A stretch of DNA of 64,000 nucleotides. Origin: Anolis carolinensis. Taxonomy: Eukaryota. The stretch spans positions 8,981,802 to 9,045,801 of the forward strand of contig NW_026943825.1 in the NCBI RefSeq assembly GCF_035594765.1, written 5' to 3'. Positions 2,154-49,378 of the stretch are shown in pieces (positions within the stretch are counted from its first letter, which is position 1; each line of letters begins with the position of its first letter). The position numbers and the translations under genes are program-made. Under the pieces are notes generated by a model. That model was not told the origin of the DNA. It saw only the letters and a program-made list of their open reading frames with translations, and did not search any database.

Positions 2154-2207
<54 letters not shown>

Positions 2208-3439: not shown

Positions 3440-3442
<3 letters not shown>

Positions 3443-3490
<48 letters not shown>

Positions 3491-5272: not shown

Positions 5273-5836
5273 AATTGAACCAAACGTGGCACGAAGAAGT
5301 CACATGACCAACAGAAAATATGGAAAGAGTTTGGTGGGCATTGAAATTTGAGTTTGGGAATTGTAGTTCACCTAGATCCAGAGAGCACCGTGAACTCCAA
5401 AGAATGATGGATCTGGATCACACTTGACACCAAAACTCAATCTGCCCAAATGTGAGCACTGATGGAGTTTGGGGAAAATAGACCTTGACATTTGGGAGTT
5501 GTCGTTGCTGGGATTTATAGTTCACCTACAATCAAAGAGCATTCTGAACTCTCACCAATGATGGAATTGAACCAAATTTGGCACGAAGAAGTCACATGGC
5601 CAACAGAAAATACTGGTCTTTGGCGACCCCTTTGACACCCCCCTTCTGACCCCCCCCCCGGGGAAAGCTGCTGTAGGGCTTGTGTTTCTTTGTAATTTTC
5701 ATGGAGCAATTCTATTTCTTTAGTTCGAAGATGCACGATTACAGACACTTTTTGTCCTTTTCGTTGTGTTTTTAAGGTCTCTGTAAAGCCACGCAATAAA
5801 CCCTGGGAGCAATAGATGTGGCCTTGGCTGCTGTAC

Positions 5837-5957
5837 CTGCTCCGCCGGCCAAAGCGGCATTCTGGAGTTCTCGCTCCCGGCGGTCCAACTCCTCCGCTTT
5901 GCGGTTCAGCTCTTCCTGACGCTTCAAGAGTTCGGCCGTGGCGGCCGCGGCCGAGTC
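5837..5957 (-). CDS. SCAMP3: SCAMP3 coding exon 4 (coiled coil)
   Basis: [40 protein letters not shown]; tatcag acceptor, GTACAG donor; 121 bp. Confidence 0.93.
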
Positions 5958-6680
5958 CTGATAGGAGACAGAGGGCAGGAGCAACCAAAGGCAATACAGG
6001 TGAAAGAGTAATAATAATAATAATAATAATAATAATATCATAAACACCTGGGCCATACCTGTTCTAAGGTATACTGCTGGCATCATAAATTGGACCAGTA
6101 AATTCCCCGCTTGTGCCCTCAGCTCTTCCCCCTTCTCCCTTCCTGCAGCATAGCCATAACACTGCGCTGCCAGCCACGCCCCCATTGTTGAAAACAGAGG
6201 AGAGAGGCGGCAAATTTACTGGTGCAGTACTTTTCAAACTCATTTATCTATAAGAAATGTGGCTAAATTTAAATGGGGATTACATGAGATTGTAGTTTTG
6301 GAATGTGTCTTTCAGCTGCATATGGTAAATGATTTATCCTATTCTTTGTTCTTTTTAAAATCCAAAACGTAGCCTACTTTCTGGATAGCCCTTGTATAAC
6401 ATTGTAACGAGCCCCTATATAGATGGGCTATAGAGTAGGCTTTGGTATTCCGAACAATAAAAGCTGTATGGCAATCTACCTCATTGTGTGTCTTGGTGTA
6501 TTCTTCCGGAGAAGATTAATCCACAGCACAACTGGAGACGAGAACCTTACAGAGTCCTTCTCTGTCTGGATGGCCATTTGTTGGGAGGGCTTTGATGGTG
6601 TATTCCCACATGACAGGGGGTTTGACTGGATGGCCCTTGGGGTGCCCTCCAACTCTATGATTTTGTATTACTCCTGTTAC

Positions 6681-6815
6681 CTGAGTGCCGTAAGAGCCAT
6701 AGTTTCTGGGCTCCGTGGGGCTCAGCTTCTTGGCTGGTGGCAACGCAGGGGCTGCTGGCGTCACGGGAAGAACTGTTGGAGCCGAGGCCGGGGGCTCGTA
6801 CGGAGGGGCGGGCTG
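6681..6815 (-). CDS. SCAMP3: SCAMP3 coding exon 3 (proline-rich); NAGNAG acceptor allows start at 6815 or 6812
   Basis: QPAPPYEPP...KKLSPTEPRNYGSYGTQ matches the SCAMP3-specific LSPTEPKNYGSY; tttgCAGCAG acceptor, GTAACA donor. Confidence 0.9.
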
Positions 6816-6894
6816 CTGCAAAGGGATTGGAGGAGACATCTTTACCATTACAGTAGAGTCCCACTTATCCACCGTTCTAGATTATCCAACACAT

Positions 6895-8295
6895 TTTTTT
6901 AAAAAATAAATTTATTAGAGGTTTTCAAACTACTTGTACATTGAAAGAGGGGGAACAATATTTATAGGAAAGTTTGGAAAAAATAAGTGAAAATCCAAAG
7001 AAAAATGAAAAAGATAAAAAAGAGGAGAGAAAGAAGGAAAGAGAGAGAAAGAAAAAAAATATTATCTATCTATATATATAAAAGAGTGATAGCATCAGGG
7101 CAGCGGACAAAACCACAAAACTACAGGGCCCCCAAACTCAAAATTTGACAACACAACCCATCTTTCACGGCTCTAGGTTGATACAACAAAAAAGAAAAGA
7201 AAAATAAAGTCCTAATTACAGGGAGAGGAATAATTGTTTTTATCCAATTGCTGCCAGTTTGAAGACTCTCCCAGTGGAACTCTCTCCCCCGGGCTGTGGT
7301 GGAGGCTCCTTCCTTGGAGGCTTTTAAGCAGAGGCTGGATGGCCATCTGTCGGGGGTGCTTTGAATGCGATTTCCTGCTTCTTGGCAGGGGGTTGGACTG
7401 GATGGCCCATGAGGTCTCTTCCAACTCTACTATTTTATGATTCTATGATTCTATGATTCTATGACTAAGCTCTGCCCACTTGGTCTCCTAGCAACCTCCT
7501 CAGCCCAGGGGACAGGCACAGTTAGGCCTCACTTAGGCCTCTTCCACAGATTATCAGATTTTAACTGGATTATATGGCAGTGTAGACTCAAGGCCCTTCC
7601 ACACAGCTATATAACCCATTTAGAATCTTATATTATCTGCTTTGAACTGGATTATCTTGACTCCACACTGCCATATAATCCACTTCAGTGTGCATACTAA
7701 ACATAAAGACAACCATACAACAGACATTCAATACCACCACTACATCAACCATTTCTCACCAACACCACCAGACAACGCCACAGAAATGCGTGACCGGGCA
7801 CAGCTAGTATACAACAACAACTCTTTATTGATTAGTCAGTTTTGACCATATCAAAACATATTATATATAATATAAATACATTTTTGAACTTCCATTCAGC
7901 CCTTGTTCCTGTTCAAGTTTCTTTTGATCTGCTTCTTTTATATTCTCTCCCGTTTAAAAAAATCTTTTTGCCGATCTGTTCTTCAAGGATTGTACTTTAA
8001 ATTCATATACTCTTCGAATACCGACCAATCAGTCTTCTTTACACCCTTTGCCAGTGTTTTTTTTTCAAATAGTATGTTAGCTGGTCCATATCTTTTATCT
8101 CCCATACTTTTTTTTAACCAGTCTTCTCTATCTGGTATCTTCTCCAACTTCCACATCCTTGCTGCCGTTGACAGAAATATGATTAATTTTTCTTTATTAA
8201 TATCCTGAAAAATGTCTTTGTCCAGAATGCCCAAAAGGTAAGTCTCTGGTTTCATTAAGTAGTTCATCTTTAAAATTTTCTGACTTTCGCCATGC
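6895..8295 (-). mobile_element. Degenerate L1-like 3' fragment inserted in a MITE, itself interrupted by a Helitron and a CR1 tail
   Basis: ORF2-like C-terminus (PETYLLG...TAAR..WK...P..EDW) at 7983-8290, A-rich tail near 6895; the MITE resumes at about 8296. Confidence 0.55.
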
Positions 8296-9441
8296 ACCAA
8301 CGCATTTTGGTAGTCAATGTTTTCAATACAGTAATAATAATAGAGTAAAATAATAAATGCAATAATAATAACAATAAGATCAGAGTGAAATAATAAATGT
8401 ATTATTAATAATAATAAAAATAGAGTAAAATAAATGTAATAGTAGCAACAATAACAGAGAAAAATAATAAATGTAATCATACCAATAATAATAGAGAAAA
8501 ATAATAAATGTACCATATATTCTTGAGTATAAACTGACCCAAATATAAGCCAACCAGGACCCTCACTCGAGTATAAGCTGAGGGGGGCTTTTTCAGTCTT
8601 AAAAAAAGGGCTGAAAAACTAGGCTTATACTCGAGTATATACAGTAATTCAACATTTTCCAACTTCCAGAGATTATGCTCGATTCCGGCCACAAGGGGAG
8701 CTGTTGCTTCATCCACTATGATTGTAGTACTTCCTCCTTGCTCTTTGATCGCTGACATTTTTACGGTGTTGTAAATTAAATTAACCTCTCCCGCATTAAG
8801 CAGTCCCTAATTTCTCTATTCACAGCTGCGGCTGTTTTCGAACTGCTTAGGTGGACAGTAAGCTAGGTTATTAAACAGTCGGGAGCTCAATCCGATGCAG
8901 GCTTCGAACTTGCCACCTTGAGGTCGGCAGTGATCTATTGCTGCTGGCGGTTAACCAGCTCCGCCACAGCCTGGTAAACAACTTATTTGCAATTAAAGCA
9001 ATTAAAAAAGCAATTAAAAACATGGCTGTTCCATTGTGCTTTTGAGTAGACAAGTCTGTTATAACCTGGCCCATATCCACATTGCCCTGTCACTTTACAG
9101 TTATCTTCCCTGCTTGTTGTGTCTATTTGATGTATTGTTCTATTCTGTAATAGACACTCCCTTCATCAATTTTGACTGTCGCCCAGACTGTTGTCCTATA
9201 TTGGACCTTTTAACGCCTTGGATGATTGTTTAATATTTTAATTATGTCTATTTTAAATCATGACTCGTTTAATTTGTTTTTAAATGCATTCTTTGATGTC
9301 TCAACTGTTGATTTTATGATATTATATGATTGTATTGGGCTTGCCCCCGTGTGAGCCGCTCCGAGAACCCATTGGGGAGATGGATACAAAATAACAAAAA
9401 TAAAAAAATAAAATAACAAAATAAAATTATTAAATTATTAA

Positions 9442-9482
<41 letters not shown>

Positions 9483-10297
9483 AGTAGAGTCTCACTTATC
9501 CAAGCCTCGCTTATCCAAGGTTCTGGATTATCCAAGCCATTTTTGTAGTCAATGTTTTCAATACATCGTGATATTTTGGTGCTAAATTAGTCAATACAGT
9601 AATTACAACATAACATTACTGCGGCCCGGGCTGTGGCGCAGGCGGGAGAGCAAGCCAGCTGCAATTAACTGCAATGAATCACTCTGACCGGGAGGTCATG
9701 AGTTCGAAGCCGCTCGGAGCCTATGTTTGTTTGTCTTTGTTCTATGTTAAAAGGCATTGAATGTTTGCCTATAATGTGATCCGCCCTGAATCCCCTTCGG
9801 GGTGAGAAGGGCGGAATATAAATGCTGCAAATAAATAAATAAATAAATATTGAACTGCTTTTTCTGTCAAATTTGTTGTATAACATGATGTTTTGGTGTT
9901 TAATTTGTAAAATCATAACCTAATTTGAGGTTTAATAGGCTTTTCCTTAATCCCTCCTTATTATGCAATATATTTGCTTATCCAAGGTTCTGCTGGCCCA
10001 TTTAGCTTGGATAAGTGAGACTCTACTGTATTATTTTTCAAGGAGCAATGTGGGCAAATCACATTTGCAGCAGATCCCAAACTGGGAAGGACAGCCAATA
10101 TCCCAGAGAATTATATGGGGATGTTGTGGACCACAGGTTGAACATGAGCCAACTGTGTGATGTGGCAGCGAAGTAGACCAATGCGATTCTAGGGTGCATC
10201 AATAGGAAGCAGGATTGTTGTCTGTTGCTCGAGAGCAGTGGTTCTCAACCTGTGGGTCCTCAGGTGTTTTGGCCTACAACTCCCAGAACACACTTAC

Positions 10298-10375
10298 CCC
10301 GGGTTTGTCGAACGGATTGTAGACGTCCAGCGTGGCATATTCCGAAGTGGGCCTGTGCTGGATGACGGCAGGGTC
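10298..10375 (-). CDS. SCAMP3: SCAMP3 coding exon 2
   Basis: [26 protein letters not shown] (NPF motif); gttag acceptor, GTAAGT donor; 78 bp, phase 0/0. Confidence 0.95.
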
Positions 10376-10946
10376 CTAACGAAAAAAGGAATCGAAACTT
10401 GAGAATCATCGCAGGAAGCCAGGCTCCAAGCGCTAAGTCATCGCTCTCCGAAAAATTATCCGTGCCGAAGGAAAGAAAGTGGCCATTACTCAGCCAAGGC
10501 TGGGTTTCTAATACTCCCAAGACACAGATATTTTGGCATGTAGTTGCATGATATGTGTGGGCAGACAATAGCAGACCGCAACAGAGAGGTTTCCCTTTAT
10601 CTCCTAGGAAGATAACGCAGCCCCGGAGGGCAAACATTACGCAAAGGCCGGTTGAGAGCAAGGAGAGGGGAGTAAACATTGCATTGGACAGCCGTTCTCC
10701 AAACACTGGGCACGGCTCCAAAGGGGGAAGGAGAGCAGATAATATGCCCAGAAGGCTAATTTAGGAAATACAGAAATTGTAGTGTCCGTCTAGTCCAACC
10801 ACCTTTTGCCACCATCAAAGCCCTCCCAACAGATGGCCATACAACCTCTGCTTTAAAGCTTCATGGTTCTTCCTTTGCATGGACGGGTGCCAAACCCAGT
10901 GTCATCATATCTTCTGTTATTATTTCCCTCAACCGTATTGGGTGAT

Positions 10947-10989
<43 letters not shown>

Positions 10990-10992
<3 letters not shown>

Positions 10993-11336
10993 AACACAAC
11001 AGACATCACAGTTGTGGAATAGAAAAAGGTTTGGATCATTGATGTCGCCATCCCAGGTGACAGTCGCATGTGACGAAAAACAACAGGAAAAACTCAGGAC
11101 CTCAAGATTGAACTTCAAAGCCTCTGGCAGAAACCAGTGCACGTGGTCCCGGTGGTGATCAGCACATTGGGTGCCGTGCCAAAAGATCTCAGCCGGCATT
11201 TGGAAACAATAGGCATTGACAAAATTACGATCTGCCAACTGCAAAAGGCCACCCGACTGGGATCTGCGCGCATCATCCAAAAATACATCACACAGTCCTA
11301 GACACTTGGGAAGTGTATCTTGTTTGCTCTGTCATA

Positions 11337-11392
<56 letters not shown>

Positions 11393-12499
11393 GCTGATAC
11401 ATCACACAGTCCTAGACACTTGGGAAGTGTCCGATGTGTGATCCAATACAACAGCCAGCAGAGTGTCTGTTGTGGACTCATCTTGTTGTGTTTCAAATAA
11501 TAGGGTCAGAAAAATTCTCAAAAGCAAGCTCAATGGAGGCAACACCATCAAGTCCATAAACACCTGGGCCGTACCTGTCATAAGATATACTGCTGGCATC
11601 ATAAACTGGACACAGATGGAACTGGACAGAAAAACAAGAAAACTCATGACCATTCATCATTCACTGCACCCTCGCAGTGATGTTGACCGGCTATATCTGC
11701 CTAGAAGATCAGGGGGCAGAGGACTCTTACAAGTCAAACAAGCAGTCAAAGAAGAAGAACATGCCCTGGCAGAATATGGAAAGCAAAGTGAAGAACCTGC
11801 TTTGATTGAAGTCAGAAATCAGAAACTCCTCAAAGCACAGCAGACAAAGAATCAGTACAAGAAAACCGCACTACAAACTAGAGCTGACAGCTGGCACAAC
11901 AAAACATTGCATGGAAAGTTCCTTGACAAAATTGAAGGAAAAGCTGATAAAGAGAAGACCTGGCTCTGGCTCACGAATGGGACCCTGAAGAAGGAGACAG
12001 AAGGCCTGATCCTTGCAGCCCAGGAGCAAGACATCAGGACAAAGGCCATTCAGGCCAAGATCGAAAAATCAGCTGATGACCCAAAATGCAAACTGTGCAA
12101 GGAAACCGACGAAACCATTTATCATCTCTTCAGCTGCTGTAAGAAAATCACACAGACAGACTACAAACAGAGGCACAACTACGTGGCCCAAATGATTCAT
12201 TGGAACTTATGCCTCATGTACCACCTCCCAGCAGCAAAGAACTGGTGGGATCACAAACCTGCAAAAGTATTGGAGAATGAGCACGCAAAGATACTGTGGG
12301 ACTTCCGAATCCAGACTGACAAAGTTCTGGAACACAACACACCAGACATCACAGTTGTGGAAAAGAACAAGGTTTGGATCATTGATGTTGCCATCCCAGG
12401 TGACAGTCGCATTGACGAAAAACAGCAGGAAAAACTCAGCCGCTATCATGACCTCAAGATTGAACTGCAAAGACTCTGGCAGAAACCAGTGCAGGTGGT
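10990..12499 (+). mobile_element. R4-clade (Dong/Rex6-like) non-LTR retrotransposon fragments in tandem within (TAA)n
   Basis: ORF 11463-12524 has CCHC (CKLC..ETIYHLFSCC), RHN and PD..D restriction-like endonuclease motifs; further 3' fragments at 10990-11320 and 11397-11498. Confidence 0.8.
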
Positions 12500-13770
12500 T
12501 TGGATAATCCAGAACCTTAGATAAGCGCATCTTGGATAAGTGAGACTCTACTGTATTATGATTATTACATTATTATATTATTATACTATATTATTATTTA
12601 ATATAGTTATAATAATATAATGTAGTAATAAGATAATAATATAACGTTATTCATAATATGTTTCTATATTCTTATATATTATCTTATGATTATTACAATA
12701 TTATTATATTTACAATATTATTATTATAGTGTTATTATACTATTATTATTATTATACTATTTTATATTGATTAGCATTGAATAGCCTTGCAGCTCCTGCC
12801 TGTGGGGAATCCTTTATTGGGAGGTGTTAGCTGGCCGTTATTGTTTATACAGTAGGGTCTCACTTATCCAACACTCGCTTATCCAACGTTCTGGATTATC
12901 CAACGCATTTTTGTATTTATTTATTTACAGTATTTATATTCCGCCCTTCTCAGTATTTACAGTATTTATATTCCGCCCTTTTTGTAGTCAACGTTTTCAA
13001 TACATCGTGATATTTTGGTGCTAAATTCATAAATAGAGTAATTACTACATAGCATTACTGTGTATTGAACTACTTTTTCTGTCAAATTTGTTGTATAACA
13101 TGATGTTTTGGTGTTTAATTTGTAAAATCATAATCTAATTTGATGTTTAATAGGCCTTTCCTTAATCTCTCCTTATTATCCAACATATTTGCTTATCCAA
13201 CATTCTGCCAGCCCGTTTACGTTGGATAAGCGAGACTCTACTGTATTTACAATATTATTATTATTATGTTATTTTATATTTTTGCTATTTTTATATTATG
13301 CTATTTTATATTGATTAGCATTGAATAGCCTTGCAGCTCCTGCCTGTGGGGAATCCTTTATTGGGATTCTGGATGAATGGATTCTAATCTTGGACATACT
13401 TAAAATTTTATATAATGTGATTTTATTTTGCAATGGTATCTGTTTGATATGAATTGTTGTTTTGTAGATTTTTTTATATGAATTGTTGTTTTTACAGTGT
13501 TTTTAGGCATTGAATTTTTGCCTATTTATTGTAAGCCGCTTCGAGTCCCCTCGGGGAGAAAGGTGGGGTAAAAGTGATGTAAATAAATAAATAAATAAAT
13601 AAATTGGGAGGTGTTAGCTGGCCCTGATTGTTTATATAATGTAGTTCAGTGTACTTCAGCTTGTGGTTCTGCTAAGGCTCTTAAATCCCTGTTTCCAAGC
13701 TAGGCCTCACCCATCCATCTTTCATATGCATTTCCATTGGAACCCTCTTGTTGTTGTGCCTCTCTAGTGC

Positions 13771-13814
<44 letters not shown>

Positions 13815-14007
13815 TCCCCGCTGGGAACCCTGGGATTTGGAGTCCAGGGCGGGGCCCGGGGCCTCCTGAGCCAGGCACTTCTAGGCCTCCCTTGGACTAC
13901 AACTCCCAGAATCCCGTGGAATCACAGACTCACTCGGCAGGAAGTGAGTTCGCAAGAGTCCCGGGCCCCATCTACACTGCCAGATAGATGTCTAATGCGG
14001 TTCTGAC

Positions 14008-14064
14008 CTGGAAGGGGTTTCCGGGGTCTCCCTCGAAGGGGTTTCCCTCTCCGCTCCGGGCCAT
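14008..14064 (-). CDS. SCAMP3: SCAMP3 coding exon 1
   Basis: ATG at 14064; MARSGEGNPFEGDPGNPFQ with two NPF motifs; CAG|GTCAGA donor; GC-rich context. Confidence 0.92.
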
Positions 14065-21996: not shown

Positions 21997-22583
21997 AATT
22001 TATCTATACACATCTAAAGCCATCTGTGTGTACGTGTCATGGGTGTCCGTAATGATTCATAATGAAGTGCAGTCATTAAAGACAAAAGAAACACAAACTT
22101 TATGTAGCACGCCTTTAGTATGTATTATAAAACCAGCTTTGCGGATGCAGGATTAGTTCTGGGATTTTCTACCCCATCCCCAGCTCCTTGTCTAGGTCTT
22201 TGGCTTCCAGACTTTTGGCCGTTTTGCCGGACACTTTCCATCTTGTCCATCTCTTGTGTTGTATTTTGCTGCCCAGAAGTGGACACAAGGTTATTATTCC
22301 AGGTGAGGTCTCTCCAAAGAGTGGGACTGCAATTCCCTTCCGTCTCTAGATACTATATTCCTATTGATGCAGCCTAGAATCGCATTGGCCTTTTGAGCTG
22401 CAGCATCACAGTGTTAGCTCACGTTTGGTTTGTGGTCCACTAAGACTTCTAAATCCCTTTCACAACCAAGGCCGGCTGAAGGTCATCGGTGACCGCTTGG
22501 CCAGTTGAACTTGACCATCACTACACCGGAAAATTGTTGTTTTGTTCCGCGATTAGAGACGTTTGTATCTGATGGTGGATCTT

Positions 22584-22790
22584 TCACATGACGGGGCATT
22601 GCACCGGCCGCTTGAGGGACTCCACCGCGCTCTCGGCCGTGACCCTCAAGGAACTGAAATCTAGGCCGGACCAGGCGGAGAAGATGGAGCCGCCCTCCGA
22701 GGGGTCCTTCGGCTTCACGATTGCCAGGAGGTCCCGGGGGAGTTTGGCCTTTCCTCCGGCCGCTTCCAGTTGCTTCCTGTCCGTCCGGTT
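22584..22790 (-). CDS. Complexin-3/4-like gene, last coding exon (CAAX C-terminus)
   Basis: ctcttgctttccctgcacag acceptor; NRTDRKQLEAAGGKAKLPRDLLAIVKPKDPSEGGSIFSAWSGLDFSSLRVTAESAVESLKRPVQCPVM*; aligns by eye to CPLX3 [25 protein letters not shown]...KCHVM; 207 bp, phase 0. Confidence 0.9.
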   Translation of the reverse strand, partial: NRTDRKQLEAAGGKAKLPRDLLAIVKPKDPSEGGSIFSAWSGLDFSSLRVTAESAVESLKRPVQCPVM

Positions 22791-23510
22791 CTGTGCAGGG
22801 AAAGCAAGAGGAAGCAGGACGGAATTAACGTTGTGTCATTTGGTCTCACAATACATCCCTATAAGTCAGCAGCTAATCCTTTCTATCTATATACATCAGT
22901 CTTGTGGTTGTGTTTGAGCATTGCATATATACATCCCTAAAGACCAGTAGCTAATCCTTTCTATTTATATACTGCCCTCTTGTGGTCACATCTGGGCACT
23001 GCATACATACATCCCTATAGGTCAGTAGCTATAGGTCCATTCAACTTGAGATTTCCTTTTCCCATTTCGTAACACTCTGCATTTCGCCTGGGATCTACGA
23101 ATTAGTCTCCTGTTTTTAACACTGTATCCTGCTTGTTGATTTTAATGATTGTTTTTATTGATGTTGATTTTTTTTACTGGGATAATTGTTTTATTGCTTT
23201 GTTACTGTTATTTGTTTGTTTTATCGGGCCTGGCCCCATGTAAGCCGCCCCAAGTCCCTTCGGGGAGATGGGGCGGGGTATAAAAATAAAGTTATTATTA
23301 TTATTATTATAGGCCAGCAACTAAACCTATCTATGTATATAATGCCCTCTTGTGGCTGTATTGCAGTGCTGCATACTTAAATACCGACAGGCCAGTAGCT
23401 AATCCTTTCTATCAATACACTGCCCTCCTGAGTTTGCATCTGAGCACTGCATACATACATGCCTATACCAATATAAAGCAGTAGCGAATTCTTTCTGTCT
23501 ACATACTCCC

Positions 23511-24310
23511 CTCTTGTGGTTGCATCTGTACACTGCGTACATACATCCCTATAGGTCAGTAGCTAATCCTTTCTATCTTCTTGCTGCCCTCTTGTGGTTG
23601 CATCTGTACACTGCGTACATACATCCATATAGGTCAGTAGCTAATCCTTTCTATCTACATGCTGCCCTCTTGTGGTTGCATCTGTACACTGCGTACATAC
23701 ATCCCTATAGGTCAGTAGCTAATCCTTTCTATCTACATGCTGCCCTCTTGTGGTTGCATCTGTACACTGCGTACATACATCCCTATAGGTCAGTACCTAA
23801 TCCTTTCTATCTCCATGTTGCCTTCTTGTGGTTGCATCTGTACACTGCGTACATACATCCCTATAGGTCAGTGTCTAATCCTTTCTATCTCCATGCTGCC
23901 TTCTTGTGGTTGCATCTGTACACTGCATACATACATCCCTATAGGTCAGTAGCTAATCCTTTCTATCTTCATGCTGCCCTCTTGTGGTTGCATCTGTACA
24001 CTGCGTACATACATCCCTATAGGTCAGTAGCTAATCCTTTCTATCTGCATACTCCCGTCTTGTGGTTGCATCTATACACTGCATACATACATCCCTATAG
24101 GTCAGTAGCTAATCCTTTCTATCTCCATGCTGCCTTCTTGTGGTTGCATCTGTACACTGCGTACATACATCTCTATAGGTCAGTAGCTAATCCTTTCTAT
24201 CTGCATACTCACCTCTTGTGGTTGCATCTGTACACTGCGTACATACATCCCTATAGCTAAGTAGCTAATCCTTTCTATCTCCATGCTGCCCTCTTGTGGT
24301 TGCATCTGAA
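23511..24310. repeat. 78-bp minisatellite, about 10 near-identical units with degenerate flanking units (22850-24560)
   Basis: Unit CTCTTGTGGTTGCATCTGTACACTGCGTACATACATCCCTATAGGTCAGTAGCTAATCCTTTCTATCTCCATGCTGCC; seen as a 26-aa periodicity in the ORF track. Confidence 0.95.
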
Positions 24311-24661
24311 CAATGCATACATAACTAGAGACCAGCAGCTAAACCTATATATGTATATAATGCCCTCTTGTGGCTGTTTATGAGCGCTGCATGCATACAT
24401 ACTAATAGGCCCGTAACTAATCCTTTCTAGCCATGCACTGCCCTCTTGTGTTTATATCTGAGCACTGCATACAGACATACCTATATAGACCAATATCTTT
24501 ATGCTGCCCTCTTGTGGTGGCTTCTGAGTACTGCATACCTATACACCAATCGCTAACCCTACTTATATATTGTCGTTTTACAAACCAAACAAACCAACCA
24601 ACCAACAAACAATTATCTTTTGATTTTATATCTATCGTCCATGGGGAGAAGGGAGTCCCAC

Positions 24662-24749
24662 CTTGGGCAGCTGATATTTCTCCCGGAGGTGAGCCCTCAT
24701 GGAGGCACGCTCCGCTTTCCGTTGCGCAAAGGCCGACTCCCGTTTGGTC
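24662..24749 (-). CDS. Complexin-3/4-like gene, central-helix exon
   Basis: ttgcag acceptor, AAG|GTGGGA donor; 88 bp; TKRESAFAQRKAERASMRAHLREKYQLPK versus CPLX3 [29 protein letters not shown]. Confidence 0.93.
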
Positions 24750-25156
24750 CTGCAATCCGGAGGTAAGAACCGTGTGTTGGACATGAGACACGTCTGGGAT
24801 ATACATGTTCCAACCCATCAAGCCATGATGGGGCCAGGATGTAATCATCGTACGATGAGATATTCATTGAAAAGCTATAGCCAAATGTTTCCAGGCAGGA
24901 AACAATCAGGGCCAGCTAACTCCTCCCAACAAAGGATTCCCCCAGGCAGGAAGCAGCCAGGCTTTGCAGCTGCAAGGCTATTCCATGCTAATCAAGGTGG
25001 CCAATGGCAATGTATTTATGAATTTAGCATGAAAACATTGCAACATTTACTACAAAAACAATGATTACTAAAAGGCAGACTGCCTTGGATAATACAAAAC
25101 CTTGGATAAGTGAAGCTGGGATAAGTGAGACTCTACTGTGTGTATGTGTGTGTGTG

Positions 25157-25211
<55 letters not shown>

Positions 25212-25670
25212 TAGCTGTGCCCGGCCATGCGTTGCTGTGGCGAAGTCTGGTGGTATGGGAAATAAAAGTATTGAGGAATTGGTGGTAATTAAGGTCAAGG
25301 GTAAAGGTTTTCCCCTGACATTAAGTCCATTATAAATGGGTTACATAGCTGTGTGGAAGGGCCTTGAGTCTATACTGCCATATAATCCAGTGCAAATTAG
25401 ATAATCTGTGGAAGAGGCCTAAGTGAGGCCTAACTCTGTCTGTCCCCTGGGCTGAGTGGGTTGCTAGGAGACCAAGTGGGCGGAGCTTAGCCTTCTAACT
25501 GGCAGCAATTGGATAAAAACAATTATTCCTCTCCCTGTAATTAGGACTTGATTTTTCTTTTCCTTTTTGTTGTATCAACCTAGAGGTGTGGATGATGGGT
25601 TGTGTTGTCAAATTTTGAGGTTGGAGGGCCTGTAGTTTTGTTGTTTTGTCTGCTGCCCTGATGCCATCAC

Positions 25671-25722
<52 letters not shown>

Positions 25723-26470
25723 TAGCTGTGCCCGGCCACGCGTTGCTGTGGCAAAGTGGTGGTGGTATTGGTTAAAAATTGTTGTATATTTTTTATTTGA
25801 CGTTATTTGCATTTTTAAATTAATTTTATTGTAAGTTATATTTTTATTTATTATATTTTATTATTTTCTTTTAGTTATTTTCTGTTATTATAGCATTTTA
25901 TTGTATTAATTTTTTAGAGTTTTTTATTATTTTTTATTGGGTTGCTAGGAGACCAAGTTGGAGGAGCTTAGCCTTCTATCTGGCAGCAATTGGATAAAAG
26001 CAATTATTCCTCTCTCTCTAATTAGGACTTTATTTTTGTTTTCTTTTTGTTGTATCAACCTAGAGGCATGGATGATGGGTTGTGTTGTCAAATTTCGAGG
26101 TTGGGGGGCCTGTAGTTTTGTTGTTTTGTGGGTTGCCGTGATGCCATCACTCTTTTATATATATAGATATACACACACACACACACTCCTTGCCCAGTTT
26201 TCAACAGACCTCACAACCTCTGAGGATGCCTGCCATAGATGTGGGCAAAACATCAGGAGAGAATGCTTCTGGAACATGGCCAGACAGCCCGGAAAACTCA
26301 CAGCAACCCTGTAAAGAAGTGTTTTGCTCACCCTCATCTTAATAGCCTCTGACCCACATTTTCAAAACCAAAATCAAGGGTCTCATACGACTGCTTCTGG
26401 GACCCCTCATCTTAGTATGTTGTGATCCTCTGATCGGCATGTTCAAAACCAAAAACCGACACTTTCTTAC

Positions 26471-26610
26471 TGTTGCTTCTGGGATCCCTGGGACGTTCGG
26501 TTGCGGCTCAAGAATCCCGGAGCGTCGGTCTCCCTCTCCTTGGGGACGTCCTTTGAGATGCAGCACATCAGTTGCCTGGCAGGAGCGCCCAGTTTAACTG
26601 CAGATCCCAT
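26471..26610 (-). CDS. Complexin-3/4-like gene, first coding exon
   Basis: ATG at 26610, 2 nt after a cttcttccag acceptor; MGSAVKLGAPARQLMCCISKDVPKERETDAPGFLSRNRTSQGSQKQ plus CA|GTAAGA donor; the phase-2 end joins the next exon in frame. Confidence 0.8.
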
Positions 26611-26792
26611 GACTGGAAGAAGGCTGGAACACACAACGTGCAAGGATACGAAAGGCAACAGAACAAAAATATAATAGCATCCCTCCAAAATGATTTGAAA
26701 TACTTGACTTGTCAGGCTTTTCCCCCGAGGAATCAGCCACAACCGGAGCCCGTGGCACAAGACTGGGACTGTTTTCCTTCCCGCGAACTCAC

Positions 26793-26850
26793 CTGTGTGG
26801 GAACCTTTGTGTTTTCGGCCTCGGCTCCCTTCGAATGTCCCGGAAGGATG
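26793..26850 (-). other. Probable 5' non-coding exon of the complexin-like gene (5' boundary approximate)
   Basis: Consensus donor CAG|GTGAGT at 26793/26792 pairs with the acceptor at 26613-26614 (180-bp intron); splicing gives gtcATGG Kozak context; TTTAAA TATA-like element near 26875. Confidence 0.55.
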
Positions 26851-27030
26851 AGAGCTCTAGTTGTCTCAAGGTCTTTAAAGAAAGATCTGGAGCAGCGCAG
26901 TCTCAGGCTTTCCTTGATCCCGACGGGTGACAGCTGGGTGGGTGGTGTCTCATGACAGGGATGATGGCCACCTGTCCGTCATCGGGACGTGCCGATCACC
27001 TGAGACACACTGCCCCACTTGGAACTAGAG

Positions 27031-36689: not shown

Positions 36690-37073
36690 TACATTAAAAA
36701 GGTTGCTGGGGCTTCCGATGGCTTGGAAAGAGAGGAAGGAGGGAGCTCGCGCAAAGGGAGGAAAGAGAAGACGAAGATTATCCTTCTCTTTGAGCCCAAA
36801 GAATGCAAAAAAATGGTACATTAAAAAACATAAATGACTTACCATATATTCTTGAGTATAAGCTGACCCAAATATAAGCCAACCAGGACCCTCACCCGAG
36901 TATAAGCCGATGGGGGCTTTTTCAGTCTTAAAAAAAGGGCTGAAAAACTAGGCTTATACTCGAGTAGAATCATAGAGTTGGAAAAGACCAGTTCATGCCC
37001 AGTTCTATATACAGTATTTCCTTGATATACAGTGCCATCTCCCCCAATCCTAAAAGCAACGGGTGTCACTCAC

Positions 37074-37153
37074 CGGGTCTTCCGGGTCATCCGGGATGGG
37101 ATGGGGCCCAGGATCCGCTCCATCATGGCCAGATGCTCTCGGTTGTCATGGGT
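37074..37153 (-). CDS. CLK2: CLK2 exon 11 ([17 protein letters not shown] motif)
   Basis: [26 protein letters not shown]; 80 bp. Confidence 0.97.
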
Positions 37154-38573
37154 CTGAATGAACACATTGAGAAGGGGTGGGGAAGAAGGATGCTATCCAC
37201 AGGCTTCAAAGGTTCCAGTTGGCCATGTTGCATTTCTGTGCCAGTTTTGGTTCAGACCCCTCAGAAATATGCGTTTTCTGGTGGTCTTTGGCAACTCCTC
37301 TGAAACCCACTCACGACCTCCCCCCAGATTGAGAAACTCTTTTCCTGCCTTTTGAACTCATGGTTCCATTGAGTTCTAATCTCCAGAGCAGCAGAAAACA
37401 AGCCTGCTCTCTCTTCCTTATTTCAACTCTGGTCCAAGCACTCTTTGCAAGAATCCCAGAAACTATACTAAGGAGACTGGAAGAAACTGGTTATATTACA
37501 ATCCAGTTGTGAGATAGATGATATTATTATTATTATTATTATTAGGTAAAGGTTTTCCCCTGATGTTAAGTCCAGTCGTGTCCAACTCTGGGGGTTGAAG
37601 CTCATCTCCATTTCTAAGCCAAAGAGCCGGCGTTGTCCGTAGACACCTCCAAGGTCATGTGGCTACGGGCATGACTGCATGGAGTGCTGTTATCTTCCCG
37701 CCGGAGCAGTACCTATTGATCTACTCACATTGGCATGTTTTTGAACTGCTAGGTTGGCAGAAGCTAGAGCTAACAGCGGGAGCTCATTCCGCTCCCCAGA
37801 TTTGAACCTGGGACCTTTCGGTCTGCAAGTTCAGCAGCTCAGCACTTTAACACTCTGAGCCACCAGAGGCTCCTATTATTATTATTACAACTTTATTTAT
37901 ATCCTGCCACCATCTCCCAGAGGGACTCGGGGCAGCTCACAAAACACTCAAGGTTCCAAGTCTTTTTTGAACTGTTCAGTTATTATTATTGTCCTGGTTT
38001 TAATTCCGTTGATGTGTTTTATTGCTTTATATAGTTATGTTTTTAATTGCTTGTTTTGTGCTTTAACCTGTGCTGTTGGGCTTGTCCCCATGTGAGCCGC
38101 CCCGAGTCCCTTCGAGGAGATGAAGGCGGGATACACAAATAAAGTTGTTGTCATTATTATTATTATTCTGTTATTCCCAGTAATTGCAGGGCTGACAGAA
38201 GTCCAATCCCAAAAATAGTTCAAGGGGCATTAGGTTGCCCATCCCATTAAGACATGGTGCTTGGTACAGTAGAGTCCCACTTATCCAACGTTCTGGATTA
38301 TCCAACGCATTTTTGTAGTCAATGTTTTCAATACATTGTGATATTTTGGTACTAAATTTATAAATACAGTAATTACTACATAGCATTACTGTGTATTGAA
38401 CTACTTTTTCTGTCAAATTTGTTGTATAACATGATGTTTTGGTGCTTAATTTGTAAAATCATAACCTAATTTGATGTTTAATAGGCTTTTCCTTAATCTC
38501 TCCTTATTATCCAACATATTCGCTTATCCAATGTTCTGCTGGCCTCTTTATGTTAGATAAGTGAGACTCTACT

Positions 38574-38617
<44 letters not shown>

Positions 38618-38765
38618 TTCATTTATATCCCGCCTCCATCTCCCCTGAAGGGGACTCGGGGCGGCTCACAGAAATATCAAATACAGTAAAAACAATAACA
38701 GTATACAATAAATCAATAGACAAAAAACATGCACCAATTACAAAATCTAAACATGGTACACTCAC

Positions 38766-38848
38766 CTGGAATAAGGTGAAGCCCATATAGTATTCAAAGA
38801 GAATGCATCCGGTGCTCCAGACATCACAGGGCTGGGCCCAGCCAAGCT
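38766..38848 (-). CDS. CLK2: CLK2 exon 10
   Basis: [27 protein letters not shown]; 83 bp. Confidence 0.96.
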
Positions 38849-38975
38849 CTGAGGAAATGAAGGAAAATGGGATCTCACTGACCATGGGATCTCACTGAGC
38901 AGCTGGTCAAACCAAAGCAGGTCGAATCCCACAGCAAACACCCACTCAAGACCCCAATGGCCCCTTTGTGCTGAC

Positions 38976-39105
38976 CTAGAATGACCTCTGGCGCCCGGTA
39001 GTGCCGCGTAGAGACAATGGTGCTGTGATGCTCGTGGTCGAAGGTGGCACTGCCGAAATCAACCACCCGGACTGCGGTGTTCTTGACACTTCGCTCGTCT
39101 CGCTT
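38976..39105 (-). CDS. CLK2: CLK2 exon 9 (DFG to APE)
   Basis: [43 protein letters not shown]; 130 bp; uses an AAG acceptor. Confidence 0.94.
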
Positions 39106-39356
39106 CTTGTGGGAAACGGGGGCGAAAGCAGGGCGGGGAAGGGGGGGAGGAAGCAGCGGTTAAGGGTACAGAACAGAGACATCTTTAGCTTCCCCTGCTT
39201 GGCTCCCATTCCATCTTGTCTTCGGATAGCAGGGCATGGGCAAACCTGGGCCCTCCGGGTGTTTTGGACTTCAACTCCCACAATTCCTAACAGCCGGTAG
39301 GTTTGCCCATGCCCTGGGACAAGGCGGAACTGATTTTCCCCAAACCACGGGCTCAC

Positions 39357-39451
39357 CTTTTCCAGGTTGTACGTCATTTCGTAATCCGAATTGACAAAGA
39401 GGATGTTTTCCGGCTTGAGGTCTGTATGAGTGAGCTTGTTTTCATGCAAAA
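39357..39451 (-). CDS. CLK2: CLK2 exon 8 (catalytic loop)
   Basis: [31 protein letters not shown]; 95 bp. Confidence 0.96.
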
Positions 39452-39560
39452 CTGCAAAGATACAGAAGAGGGGGAAACTATTAGTTCGCTTTTAGAATTT
39501 AGAATTGAACGGAAGTTGATGAACACATCTAATAATAATAATAATGGCCTTATTTGTATT

Positions 39561-40248
39561 TGTAAAGAAGTGTGTTTTATTTTGATTTATAGATGTCATG
39601 TTTGTTTAATTTCGTTTTAAAAGTCATGTTTAGCTATGTTTAAAAGGGTAAGTATTAGTTACCAGTGCGTGGGGGATGGTAACCAGCTCAGCATTCTGAG
39701 GCAGGTTACCATTGTAACGAGGGCGGAGCCAACCGCCGTTTGAAGAAAAAGGAGGGAATATTTTAAAAAACAGTTTAGTCTGTGATTTTTAGTCACAGGG
39801 AAGACACTGGTTCCAAGTTAGGGAAACTAGGGGAACTCAGATCTCTGGTGGTGTTAAATTAAGCAAGTTGGGTGACTTGTTTGAGTTTATTTGTAGAGTC
39901 TGAGTAGTAGGGGGAAGAAGTCCCAGTTAGATCCAAAGTGATCAGTTAATAGCTTTGCAACCATTATCTAAGTGCTTATAAAGAAGTTACTGTAACCACT
40001 AAGCTCTGTGCCTGAAATAAACTTATTTTTTTTGTTCTTCAATATCCAAGTCTCTATCACCTATTTTCAAAATTAAGTAATGCTACCATCTAATGTGAAT
40101 AAGAATAAGAAAAAATAAGAGAATAAAGAAAAAAAGATAAATTCCTCTCTGCCTGACATCTCCACAATTGGTGGCAGCGGTTATAGTTATATATATATAT
40201 AATAAAATAATTAATAAAAAGATTCCTTCTCTACCCCACATCTCTACA
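39561..40248 (+). mobile_element. LTR-derived element with internal PBS-like sequence
   Basis: TGTA...TACA termini, 5-bp TSD GTATT, AATAAA near 40016, TGGTGGCAGCGG near 40168. Confidence 0.65.
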
Positions 40249-40636
40249 GTATTTATACTTTATTTATATTTATATTCATCTATTATTTATTTACTTACTT
40301 TTATGTATTTATATGGAAGTTGAGAACACATCTAATAATAATAATAATAAAGATAGCCTTATTTATACTTATACTTATTTATAATGTATTTATTTTTACT
40401 TACTGTATATACCCGATTATAAGTCTAGTTTTTCAGCCCTTTTTTTAAGACTGAAAAAGCCCCCCCCCCCCCCCCCCCGGCTTATACTTGGGTGAGGATC
40501 CTGGTTGGCTTATATTCGGGTCAGCTTATACTCGAGAATATATGGTACATTTATTTTTTTCTCTATTATTATTGGCATTATTACATTTATTATTTTTCTC
40601 TATTATTGTTGGTACTTTTACATTTATTTTACTCAA

Positions 40637-40677
<41 letters not shown>

Positions 40678-41738
40678 ACATTTATTATTTCAATCTGATC
40701 TTATTATTATTATTGCATTTATTACTTTACTCTAATATTACATGTATTATTTTCCTGTATTATTATTTATTATTATTACATTTATTATTTTACTCTATTA
40801 TTATTAAAAAGATGCATAAGCAAATTTACATTGAAGAAGATGAGAATAATGATTTGATCAGAGTTGGACAATCTTATCTTAAATTTGAGCTTGATGTAAA
40901 TATTCAAAAACATTTAACCTACTGATGCCTCAATTAATGTAATTTTATTGGTATCTATTTTTATTTCTGAAATTTATTACCCTCGGCTTATACTGGAGTC
41001 AATGTTTTCCCAGTTTTTTGTGTTAAAATTAGGTGCCTCGGCTTATATTCCGGTCGGCTTATACTTGAGTATATACGGTATATTCATTTATTATGTACTT
41101 TTATGTATTTATATTTATGGGGCCCCTGGTGGCACAGTGTGTTAAAGCGCTGAGCTGCTGAACTTGCGGACTAAAAGGTCCCAGGTTCAAATCCCGGGAG
41201 CCGAATGAGCACCCACTGTTAGCCCCAGTTCCTGCCAACCTAGCAGTTCGAAAACATGCCAATGTGAGTAGACCAATAGGAAGGTAATGGCGCTCCATGC
41301 AGTCATGCTGGCCACATGACCTGGAGATGCCTGTGGACAACGCCGGCTCTTCAGCTCAGAAATGGAGATGAGCACCAACCCAGAGTCGGTCACGACTGGA
41401 CTTAACATCAGGGGAAACCTTACCTTTTATTTACATTTGAGAACACATCTAATAATAATAATAATAGCCTTATTTATACTTATATTTATTTATAATTTAC
41501 TTATTTTTACTTATATTTATATTTATTTATTTATTTACTCATATTTATTTATATTTATACGGAAGTTGATGAACACATCTAATAATAACGATAACAACAA
41601 CAATATTAATAGTAATTTATATTTATATTATTAGCATAGCATAATATTCAATATTCTATTCAACCCATCATTTGCCATTGATGCACCTCTTCTTGGCCCC
41701 CATGAACGCACCCGGTCTTGCCCACTCCGAATACTCAC

Positions 41739-41905
41739 ACTTGACAGCCTGGCACACTTGGTAGGCCATGTGCCTGATCTGGTGGAGCGGGTAAGGGAGG
41801 TAGTTGTTGTCCTTCAGGAAGTCAAAGGTGCTGAGCCCCAGGAGCTCAAAGGAAATGCACATGTGGCCGTGGTAGTCAAACCAGTCGTACATCTGGACAC
41901 ACAGG
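41739..41905 (-). CDS. CLK2: CLK2 exon 7
   Basis: [55 protein letters not shown]; 167 bp. Confidence 0.96.
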
Positions 41906-42330
41906 CTGGAGCGGGAAACGGAAAGCAAGACGCAAGTGGGTGAAAAAAGGAAAGCGGATGCACACCGCCTTTGACTGAAGACATTCAGGGAGAGATAGGA
42001 CGAGAAACTGAAAATACAGTAATAAGTATGTGCATGGATTTTGGTATTTCATGTGAAACATTAGTTGCATGGGCCATCTAGTCCAACCGCCTTATGACAG
42101 GTGGGAAAAGCACAATGAAAGCAGCCCTGAAAGATAGCCACGCAGCCTGTTTAAAAGCCTCCAAAGAAGGAGGCACACTCTGATGCTTATAATGTTTTAA
42201 TTGCTGCATGTTTTAACTTGTTGTATGTTTCCTGCTGTGCTGGAAACCGCTCTGAGTCCCTTGGGGAGATAGAGTGGTATATAAATAAATTTTATTTATT
42301 ATTATTATATGATGCAAACCCCACATACTG

Positions 42331-45300
42331 TGTCAGGCTTACTTCAAAGGACCAGTCTGAACGCAGATCAAAGACAGCTGCTCTCAAACACAATCTTTAT
42401 TGAAGAATACATGACTTTGGAAAAGTCGAGAATGACCTAATGTTTACATACATCTAATTTTATCACTTCTGATGCAACGTAATATCACACGCAAATATCA
42501 TCATCAAACCCCACCTTCTGGATCACATTTCCACCAAGGTTTCTATCCCCCCCACACTACAGCAATTATAATTGTTTATACTTTCACCCCTGAGTTCCCA
42601 GGCTCATTTTATCTTCTCCCGCCAGGTGCTCGCATGTTTATGTTATGAAGTCAGATTCAGGGCTTGGAAATTCAGCCCTGGGATCTGGCTGCATGACATG
42701 GCGCCCCCGTTTTCTTCGTCCTCCTCTTCGGTTCTTCTTTCACCATAGTCCTGAAACAAATCAAACAATAACTCTATGGGTCCATTTTGTCTAAAGTCCC
42801 CATATATTTTTTCAGCAAGCTGCGATGGAAGACTGGGTGTATTTTCCCTAAACTTTTTGGCAATGCCAATTGGAAAGTCACTTCATTGATAACACCCTGT
42901 ATTCTGAATGGTCCAATATATTTGGGGCCCAGTTTTCTTGAAGGTAACCCCAATTTGATGTTTTGGGTACTTAACCACACTAGATCTCCTTTATCTAATT
43001 TATCGCCTTCCACCCTCTTTCTGTCTGCGAACGTTTTATACTTTTTGTGTGCTTCTTTTAACGAAGCAGTCACTTGATTCCAACATTCCATCATTTGCGT
43101 TTTCCATTTCCCTGCCTCTGTTCCTTCATTTTCTGTCCACCTCGGCAATTGGGGTAAAGGTTGTATTTCATACCCGTAAACTACTTCAAAGGGGGTTTTG
43201 TTTGTTGCTGAATGTATAGTTGAATTAAAGGCTAGTTCCGCAAACGCCAACCACCTAGACCAGTCATTTTGTCTCATGTTAGAGTACATTCGAAGGAACT
43301 GCCCAAGCGTTTGCTGAGTACGTTCTACCGCCCCGTTTGTCATGGGGTGAAAAGCAGAACTTAAACTCCTTTCTGCTCCTAGCATTTCCAAGAATTTTTC
43401 CCAAAATTTTGCTGTGAATTGTACTCCTCTGTCACTGACTACTCTACTTGGACATCCATGTAATTTGTAAATATGGTTTATGTACAATTCAGCTAGTTTC
43501 TCAGCCGATGGTAGCTTCGTCAGTGCTATAAAGTGGGCCTGTTTAGAAAACAGGTCTAATACTGTCCAAATATAACGATGTCCTTTGCTGACTGGCAGTT
43601 CTCCCACAAAGTCCATAGCTACACATTCCCAAGGCCTGGTAGGTTCCGCTACTGTCTGTAACAATCCCATAGGCTTCCCTCCTCCTGATTTATTTCTGGC
43701 ACAATCATCACATTGGACAACATGATTTTTTATGTCCTTCCTCATTCCTGGCCACCAACAATGTTTTGCTATTGCCTTTGTTGTTTTGGTAATTCCTGTA
43801 TGACCAGCGCTCTGGTTGTTGTGAAAACGATGCAGAATCTTAATCCTTAATATTGCTGGGATATACAGTTTCTTGTTTACAAACCAAAATCCCCCCTTCT
43901 GGTCCCCCTTTTCCGCGTTGGACGCGATCCATTGATCTCCTTTATAAGACTGTTTTAGTTCATTTCCCCAGTTATCTTCCCCGCCGAGTTCGACAAAAGC
44001 CGTGTCCTCCTTTTGGGTTTGTGCTCTTGTCCTGACAGCTAAGCCCCATTGTTTGTCAGAGAATATTGTCCCCTCCTTTGCTGTGGTTAGGCCTTCGTGT
44101 TGAGGCATGCGTGAAAGAGCATCTGCCAAGACATTCTGTTTCCCTTGAAAAAACTTTAATTGGAAATCGAATCTGCTGAAGTATTGCGCCCATCTGATTT
44201 GTTTGGGGGACAATTTTCTAGGAGACTTTAAATACTGGAGATTCTTATGGTCAGACCAAATTTCGAATGGGATTCCGCTTCCTTCGAGGAAGTGTCGCCA
44301 GCATTCTAAGGCTTTTAATATGGCTAATGCCTCTTTTTCCCATATTGGCCAACTTTTTTCAGTTTCGCTGAACTTCCGTGACAAATATCCACAGGGTTTT
44401 AAGTTCCCATTTTGATCCTTTTGCAATAGCACTGCCCCGTACGCACAGTCTGAGGCATCGCAATGGATTATGAAAGGGCTCCTGATATCAGGGTGTTTTA
44501 GGATGGGTCCTTCAGTGAAGCATTCTTTTAAGGCCTCGAATGCCTTTTGGCATTCTGGCGTCCAACTCAGTTTGGCGCCGGGAGCTTTCACTTTTGCTGT
44601 CTCCCCTTTCCCTTTTGTTTTTAAAAGTTCTGTAAGGGGTGCGGTTATTTGTGCAAAGCCTTTTATGAAGGGTCTGTAAAAATTTGCAAACCCCAGAAAT
44701 GATTGTAATTGCCTCCTTGTTTGAGGCACTCCCCATTCTTTCACATCTGCTACTTTAGCTGGATCCATAGCTAACCCTTCTGGAGACATCCGATATCCCA
44801 GAAAGTCAATTTGAGTTTTATTAAATTCACATTTGGACAGTTTTGCGTACAGCTTTGCTTCTCTTAGTCTCTGCAAAACTTCCCGGACCAATTTTACGTG
44901 CTTTTCCTTATCTTCAGAAATGATCAAGATATCATCAAGGAATATGAACACCCCTCTGTACAATAACGGGTGTAGTATTTCATTTATAAGCTGCATAAAG
45001 CAGCCGCTTCCATTTTTTAACCCGAAAGGCAAAATTTCGTATTCAAAATGGCCGAATGCGCAGGAAAATGCGGTTTTCCAAGTATCCTCCGGTTTGATCC
45101 TTAATTTATGATACGCTTCAATTAAATCCAGTTTAGTAAATATGCTCCCTTTCTTCAATACGGTAATTAAATCCTTGACTAAGGGCATAGGGTATTTATT
45201 GTCCTTGGTAATTGCGTTTAAATTTCGATAATCAATGCACAATCTTAGGGAATTGTCTTTCTTTCTCCTAAATAACACTGGAGCCCCGAGAGGAGAATTA

Positions 45301-49365: not shown

Positions 49366-49378
49366 CACACATACTCAC

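Follow-up and report, generated by a model that had tools for sequence, protein, structure and literature searches.

Textbooks and recent reviews (e.g., PMC11613576) count four vertebrate complexins. A 64,000-nucleotide stretch of the Anolis carolinensis genome (contig NW_026943825.1; the whole stretch is referred to here as the window) raised the question of whether this lizard has a further complexin gene, located between a CLK kinase gene and a SCAMP gene, as a first-pass annotation made from the sequence alone had proposed. We found the locus to be a genuine four-exon gene of A. carolinensis, and consider it probable that it represents a real, old paralog of the CPLX3/4 subfamily, whose product would be a lipid-anchored SNARE binder with little clamping activity.

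Three of the four exons are coding, and the predicted product of 144 amino acids (aa) is the same length as that of the Anolis sagrei ortholog (P0055). The coding exons, all on the minus strand, extend over 26610-26471, 24749-24662 and 22790-22584, with GT donors (CA/GTAAGA and AAG/GTGGGA, the slash marking the cut), AG acceptors (TTGCAG/G and GCACAG/AA) and phases of 2 then 0. Their coding content is 46 codons plus 2 nucleotides (nt), 1 nt plus 29 codons, and 68 codons plus the stop, respectively. These three exons, their GT-AG sites and their phases had been predicted beforehand and were borne out, with each exon translation being the same as the matching segment of the predicted protein. 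The features of the gene are as follows (UTR, untranslated region).

26793..26954, minus strand: non-coding first exon (5' UTR), upstream limit approximate; contig pieces reach 26913 (run X10) and 26954 (run X9); donor CAG/GTGAGT
26471..26623, minus strand: coding exon 1, with 13 nt of 5' UTR and the start codon at 26610-26608; encodes the N-terminus with a Cys-Cys pair and a variable basic linker
24750..26470, minus strand: intron 1, 1721 nt, GT..AG, packed with interspersed repeats and (TA)n/(TG)n runs; joint in all four runs
24662..24749, minus strand: exon 2, 88 nt, codes for the central SNARE-binding helix
22791..24661, minus strand: intron 2, 1871 nt, GT..AG, contains a 78-bp minisatellite; joint in all four runs
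22105..22790, minus strand: last exon, with 68 codons (22790-22587), CAAX box CPVM, stop codon at 22586-22584 and approximately 479 nt of 3' UTR

Evidence that these exons are joined in transcripts came from public sequencing runs, which were searched with exon 3 and the proximal 3' UTR; this stretch was present in 20 runs from 8 studies. Four small, transcriptome-sized runs, each from a different study, were aligned to positions 21800-27400 of the window. A single contig per run (684-1022 nt) spanned the exons, with no mismatches in three of the runs and one in the fourth. All four contigs joined 22790 to 24662 and 24748 to 26470 (the latter cut at +1), and the skipped segments had CT..AC ends, corresponding to GT..AG when read on the minus strand. 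This match to the predicted junctions, found in four of four runs from four studies, was well beyond chance. The depth over unique intron stretches in the same runs was zero, and the runs therefore behave as RNA, although the run records do not say so. In addition, two of the four runs (X1 and X10) contained a joint between 26623 and 26793, skipping a 169-nt intron (GT..AG on the minus strand) and leading to an untranslated first exon that had not been part of the original prediction. Contig pieces stopped at 22105-22132, indicating a transcript 3' end near 22105. Contig depths across the four runs were modest (5-67). Together, these data indicated that the gene is transcribed and is spliced exactly as predicted.

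Two other sequence elements of the transcribed region were observed. The UTR exon has, at its extreme 5' end, an ATG (26951-26953, minus strand) that would start an upstream open reading frame (ORF) of 16 codons; as a single contig (run X9) covers it, this ATG may be 5' of the main transcription start. The 78-bp minisatellite occupies a large part of intron 2, with approximately 15 copies at 23308-24485 (also 22851-23031), and the array is older than the split between A. carolinensis and A. sagrei, because the same repeat matches A. sagrei intron 2 repeatedly.

The existing protein model of the gene is incomplete. Exon 3 was 100% identical to UniProt A0A803TY07 (A0A803TY07_ANOCA, Anolis carolinensis), and this entry, a 112-aa "uncharacterized protein", continues through exon 2. 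Its first 15 residues, however, translate intron 1 just upstream of exon 2 (approximately 24822-24866, minus strand). As the start of the entry comes from intron sequence, the true, RNA-supported first coding exon (26471-26610) is absent from the model, which needs correction. The gene had been described as hidden, and this held for the truncated A. carolinensis model only; elsewhere its orthologs are auto-annotated, for the most part under the NCBI name "complexin-3-like", as the first-pass annotation had cautioned might be the case, and pipelines also use complexin-4-like. Among the papers open to searching, none used the names "complexin-3-like", "cplx3l" or "complexin-4-like", and nothing relevant on complexin and Anolis was found. 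The gene is, in short, one that pipelines have predicted in relatives yet that is undescribed in the literature.

Searches to classify the protein were run exon by exon, with database orthologs (A. sagrei P0055 and gecko P0002) as full-length stand-ins. Exon 2 alone matched the Pfam Synaphin family (PF05835) at 36.3 bits (cut-off 27, E=8e-9), exons 1 and 3, each searched alone, had no Pfam match, and all of the orthologs retrieved carried PF05835. HMMER aligned exon 2 to residues 47-73 of Complexin-1 in PDB chains of the SNARE complex; this phmmer match was weak (E ~0.5) and only its alignment was used. Residues R50, R61, R65, K71 and Y72 fell on Complexin-1 R48, R59, R63, K69 and Y70 in that alignment, exactly as had been claimed. 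These residues of Complexin-1 (CPX I) are essential for SNARE binding (Reim et al. 2005, PMC2171701), and none of their five counterparts varied among 15 orthologs from squamates and turtles.

The CPLX3/4 subfamily has been defined by three coding exons and an invariant 88-nt middle exon (Zanazzi & Matthews 2010, PMC2941751). The lizard gene agreed with this definition, to which it had been assigned at the outset, in having three coding exons, a CAAX end and an exon 2 of 88 nt, the latter length being the same in A. carolinensis, A. sagrei, Lacerta, Podarcis and Dermochelys. The C-terminal CAAX box is CPVM, with CP[VI]M kept throughout squamates and turtles. In CPX III and IV, a CAAX box with a terminal Met has been shown to be farnesylated (PMC2171701). 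These comparisons support the gene encoding a complexin of the CPLX3/4 subfamily.

To which member of the subfamily does it correspond? An ortholog set was assembled from an exhaustive exon 3 search and two homolog searches, with approximately 30 long, multi-stretch exon 3 matches being discarded as low-complexity noise. Orthologs were identified in more than 15 squamates, plus turtles and crocodilians, and in more than 20 reptile species overall; that of A. sagrei had 78%, 100% and 91% identity in exons 1, 2 and 3, respectively. The pipeline names of these proteins, and the fact that CPLX3 is the best-scoring named relative, would suit a simple explanation in which the gene is no addition to the family but CPLX3 (or CPLX4) itself in the lizard, having moved and evolved quickly. 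We regard that explanation as scarcely credible, as it is already contradicted by six species (Sceloporus, Dermochelys, Pelodiscus, Euleptes, Heteronotia, and Lerista) that carry both genes, the true complexin-3 in each case being the canonical 157 aa. The evidence for co-existence comes from those six species. Profile scores were 127-264 bits for the group at the CLK2-SCAMP locus versus approximately 100 bits for true CPLX3. Furthermore, a maximum-likelihood tree of 56 proteins contained a branch (support 99/98) that set the reptile group, together with the crocodilians, Xenopus laevis P0126 and stingray P0080, apart from CPLX3, CPLX4 and a separate bird-type clade. The trees were unrooted, without a CPLX1/2 outgroup, teleost cplx4c or further chondrichthyan sequences. 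The first-pass annotation had claimed an extra paralog, a claim that it would have given up had a tree made the gene the true CPLX3 or CPLX4 ortholog with no second copy; the outcome was the opposite, with both genes in the same species and the two groups on either side of the split.

The neighbors of the gene pointed in the same direction. The CLK kinase is upstream, on the same strand as the complexin, and the SCAMP gene is downstream.

37073..50343, minus strand: upstream neighbor CLK2; glycine loop 50314-50337, HTDLKPEN 39405-39428, DFGSA 39046-39060, LAMMER 37115-37132
1093..14043, minus strand, extending beyond the window: downstream neighbor, SCAMP gene; NPF-repeat first coding exon at approximately 14011-14043, NWPPLP 1486-1497, further stretch 1105-1122

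Human CLK2 was the best PDB match of the kinase exons, with 78.3 bits versus 65-68 bits for CLK3 and CLK4 in one comparison and 49.2 versus 38-41 bits in another, and CLK1 was lower too. The SCAMP exons scored 64.1 and 52.0 bits against Pfam SCAMP (cut-off 27), and we infer from the CLK2 adjacency and the 348-aa length of annotated orthologs that this gene is SCAMP3. The location originally given, between SCAMP3 and CLK2, was thus upheld, with CLK2 told apart from CLK3, the SCAMP family confirmed and SCAMP3 as the inferred identity. In human, CLK2 and SCAMP3 are neighbors, and the respective paralogs, CLK3 and SCAMP2, are near CPLX3 on 15q24, an arrangement that fits an origin by whole-genome duplication. 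Published loci of the established genes are CSK-LMAN1L-CPLX3 and LMAN1-CPLX4-RAX (PMC2941751). Relocation of a CPLX3 ortholog is contradicted by the neighbor being CLK2 and not CLK3, and by flanks of CLK2 and SCAMP instead of CSK-LMAN1L, in addition to the position of the gene on the opposite side of the 99/98 split. On these comparisons, the gene appears to be the ortholog of neither CPLX3 nor CPLX4 and to represent a separate old paralog lineage, ancient and ohnolog-like.

Retroelement ORFs were also present in the window, at 18913-21237 (plus strand), 3830-5272 (minus strand) and 11463-12524 (plus strand). There were RVT_1 reverse transcriptases between the complexin and SCAMP genes and inside the SCAMP span, the latter also containing a zf-RVT ORF (below the Pfam cut-off). 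A 1608-aa ORF at 42774-47600 (minus strand), inside a CLK2 intron, is a further candidate retroelement.

How old the lineage is can be judged from its distribution and synteny. The kinase-complexin-SCAMP order was common to the turtle Dermochelys, Xenopus laevis, A. sagrei and two lacertids. The Dermochelys CLK exons were 90-100% and its SCAMP exons 83-85% identical to those in the window, and in X. laevis there was a Synaphin gene between the kinase and SCAMP, in the same orientation, with CLK exons 86-100% identical to those in the window. In Dermochelys coriacea (L001:1-18424) a 778-aa gene model with Pkinase and SCAMP domains spans the complexin; it has the appearance of read-through from CLK2 into SCAMP3, which could be true transcription or an error of annotation.

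A young, reptile-specific duplicate of CPLX3/4, instead of an ancient paralog, would account for clear full-length orthologs being mainly from squamates, turtles and crocodilians, and the long-branch Xenopus and stingray sequences could have been attracted to the fast reptile clade. The position and orientation of the Xenopus gene argue against this, as do the N-terminal Cys-Cys and CP.M end that the stingray protein has in common with the reptile clade. In addition, the stingray protein remained on the reptile side after Xenopus was removed, and an approximately unbiased test rejected its grouping with the bird type (p=0.019). We therefore consider a young duplicate quite unlikely. A retrocopy origin was also considered and was rejected, as introns are retained. 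The old paralog lineage that we favor would, from the tree and locus comparisons, be present in squamates, turtles, crocodilians (possibly decaying), Xenopus and probably the stingray; no member of it was found among the mammal and bird proteins retrieved.

To determine the constraint on the gene, substitutions were counted per exon and then summed, with the split codon excluded (Sd and Nd, synonymous and non-synonymous differences; dS and dN, the corresponding rates).

A. carolinensis versus A. sagrei: Sd 41, Nd 18; dS 0.57, dN 0.057; dN/dS 0.10 (bootstrap 0.05-0.19; no replicate >=1)
Lacerta versus Podarcis: Sd 10.5, Nd 13.5; dS 0.105, dN 0.04; dN/dS 0.38 (bootstrap 0.17-0.92)

Both ratios were below the value of 1 that had been named as a sign of lost function. 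Exon 2 had synonymous changes only, with zero amino-acid changes in both species pairs. Across the 15 squamate and turtle orthologs, the invariant positions included Cys16, Cys17, the KAERA..R...R.KY.LP core and C141/P142/M144. The gene is under purifying selection, strongest on the central helix, and this, with its expression in four studies, bears out its earlier description as functional.

These data also bear on whether the gene might be a transcribed relic heading to a pseudogene, with no protein function. Its high rate, the modest contig depths, the crocodilian models without a CAAX box, and the loss from mammals and birds, which shows the gene to be dispensable, could all be read in that way. 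Such a reading is contradicted for squamates and turtles, in which the SNARE-contact residues, Cys-Cys and CAAX box are invariant; more than 20 species have an uninterrupted ORF, the anole dN/dS had no bootstrap replicate at or above 1, and exon 2 had only synonymous changes. Species with an intact ORF diverged well over 100 million years ago. We consider a relic very unlikely.

The two anoles differed considerably at synonymous sites, with a dS of 0.57 overall and of 0.86 in exon 1 (window 22587-26610 versus L005). Alignable intron segments were approximately 80% identical, a comparison that is biased because only conserved intron parts align. The complexin locus seems to evolve fast. In the crocodilian models (Alligator sinensis P0064 and Gavialis gangeticus P0065) the central helix is kept, and the second Cys of the pair and the CAAX box are absent, possibly due to gene decay or to a mis-predicted last exon.

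If the gene is a functional complexin, what might its product do? The main difference from its relatives precedes the central helix. CPLX3, CPLX4 and the bird type have in common a nearly invariant accessory-helix motif, GM[TS]REE[YF]EEYQ.QL.EEK.ER, with 6-8 acidic of 24 residues, whereas amniote members of the CLK2-SCAMP lineage have there a basic, Ser/Gln/Pro-rich stretch of variable length, with 1-2 acidic and 5-7 basic of 24 residues. Xenopus is intermediate in this region and the stingray retains a recognizable motif. Column identity in the accessory region was 59% versus 95% in the CPLX3 comparison. Accessory-helix identity among CPLX3/4 is 56-100% (PMC2941751), and this conserved sequence, a trait of CPLX3/4, was not found in the lizard gene. 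The acidic cluster of the C-terminal half is lost as well (5-7 acidic residues versus 13-18). AlphaFold2 on the ortholog alignment produced one confident helix at residues 43-72, with residues 1-42 disordered, and a CPLX3 control at equal alignment depth had a helix at 40-78, so that 7 residues of predicted helix precede the first SNARE-contact Arg here, versus 17 in the CPLX3 control. The N-terminal Cys-Cys is lineage-specific; squamates, turtles and the stingray have the pair, and crocodilians and Xenopus have one Cys.

From these features we propose that the central helix would bind the groove of assembled SNARE complexes, like other complexins, and that the CPVM box, if farnesylated as in CPX III and IV (PMC2171701), would tether the protein to vesicle or presynaptic membranes. 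Cys16 and Cys17, both invariant, may contribute a palmitoyl anchor. The acidic accessory helix appears to be replaced by a variable, basic and probably disordered linker, and as this short pre-helix segment stands in its place, there would probably be little clamping that depends on an accessory helix. The protein would most likely be a membrane-concentrated facilitator or stabilizer of primed SNARE complexes, clamping weakly or not at all.

The same differences could instead indicate a functional protein outside the classical complexin role, e.g., a doubly lipid-anchored membrane adaptor acting beyond regulated exocytosis. Loss of the acidic accessory motif and of the acidic C-terminal cluster, the new invariant Cys-Cys, and an identity to CPLX3/4 of only 28-39% would be compatible with such a shift. 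However, it is precisely the SNARE-binding helix that is most constrained, and none of its five critical residues has changed; such a departure from the classical role appears unlikely to us.

Several observations weigh against our interpretation of the gene as an old, lipid-anchored SNARE-binding paralog. The lacertid dN/dS bootstrap extends to 0.92, and mean column identity across squamates and turtles was 75% versus 93% for CPLX3, indicating much faster evolution, which could reflect relaxed constraint or a shifted function. The 10 kb flanks of the stingray locus contained no CLK or SCAMP exons. The Xenopus and stingray rows of the tree are long branches, and the placement of the stingray is probable, not certain, because both outlying rows are long-branched and a CPLX1/2 outgroup is missing. 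Both AlphaFold models were low in overall confidence (mean pLDDT, the predicted local distance difference test, of 61 here and 69 for the control), as is expected for complexins. As the crocodilian models are without the Cys-Cys and CAAX box, both would be dispensable or lost in at least one lineage. N-myristoylation as a family feature was rejected, Gly2 being replaced by Glu in many orthologs.

The scope of these findings is modest, as the family and likely mechanism are known and the gene has already been predicted in related species. Nevertheless, with this gene and the bird type, the CPLX3/4 branch is larger than a count of four complexins implies, and mammals lost part of it. A protein that has a SNARE-binding helix and a prenyl-anchor signal but is without the accessory motif is a natural variant against which models of clamping and facilitation can be set; if the clamp-less reading is true, it is a ready-made natural experiment in the debate on accessory-helix function. 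The gene is also an unstudied candidate release regulator for the neurobiology of reptiles, turtles and frogs.

Among the known systems, CPLX3 resembles the lizard gene in belonging to the Synaphin family, in its division into three coding exons, the middle one of 88 nt, in the residues that contact SNAREs, in a related N-terminus and in a CAAX box whose last residue is Met. The lizard protein differs in being 30-39% identical and faster-evolving, in its length of 144 versus 157 aa, in having an N-terminal Cys-Cys and neither the accessory motif nor the acidic C-terminal cluster, and in its locus, CLK2-SCAMP3 as opposed to CSK-LMAN1L. The subfamily features are likewise in common with CPLX4, from which it differs in identity (28-35%), locus and clade. 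CPLX4 has a low affinity for SNAREs and therefore requires farnesylation for its function (PMC2171701), which makes it a plausible model for the lizard protein.

The only published extra paralog of the CPLX3/4 type is zebrafish complexin 4c, which is divergent and has relatives in medaka and Xenopus (PMC2941751), and is enriched in rods (PMC5806438). Its reported identity is 57% with mammalian CPLX4 and 50% with CPLX3 (PMC2941751), versus the 28-39% of the lizard gene, the comparison being by published values only. These much higher identities suggest that cplx4c is another paralog, and on identity alone, orthology between it and the lizard gene looks unlikely.

The bird-type "complexin-3-like" gene is also a CPLX3/4-type paralog that is absent from mammals. 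It differs from the lizard gene in having a canonical acidic accessory motif, a CALM end, a clade of its own (100/99) and a locus between MATK and a RAX-type gene. Bird-type proteins are 152-155 aa, and the gene of Nyctibius grandis P0136 is at L003:10001-11561, with flanks at L003:3562-8705 and L003:19426-21561. The SH2 exon of the flanking Nyctibius kinase scored 114 bits with MATK/CHK versus 74.5 with CSK, and the other flank encodes a homeodomain plus OAR (RAX-type). The bird-type gene would bring the number of CPLX3/4-type loci to four, and it may correspond to zebrafish cplx4c. A tentative extension, which we put forward as possible but doubtful, is that the jawed-vertebrate ancestor had four CPLX3/4-type ohnologs (CSK-LMAN1L-CPLX3, LMAN1-CPLX4-RAX, MATK-bird type-RAX2-like, and CLK2-this gene-SCAMP3), of which mammals kept two, the CLK2-SCAMP3 member being clamp-less with a double anchor (palmitoyl Cys-Cys and farnesyl).

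Finally, farnesylated invertebrate complexins differ from the lizard protein in that their sequence is closer to the CPLX1/2 type and a functional accessory helix is kept. The likeness is at the other end of the protein, as the Drosophila CAAX isoform is localized and regulated via a C-terminal prenyl anchor (PMC5890968, PMC2171701), and prenylation is predicted for the lizard protein.

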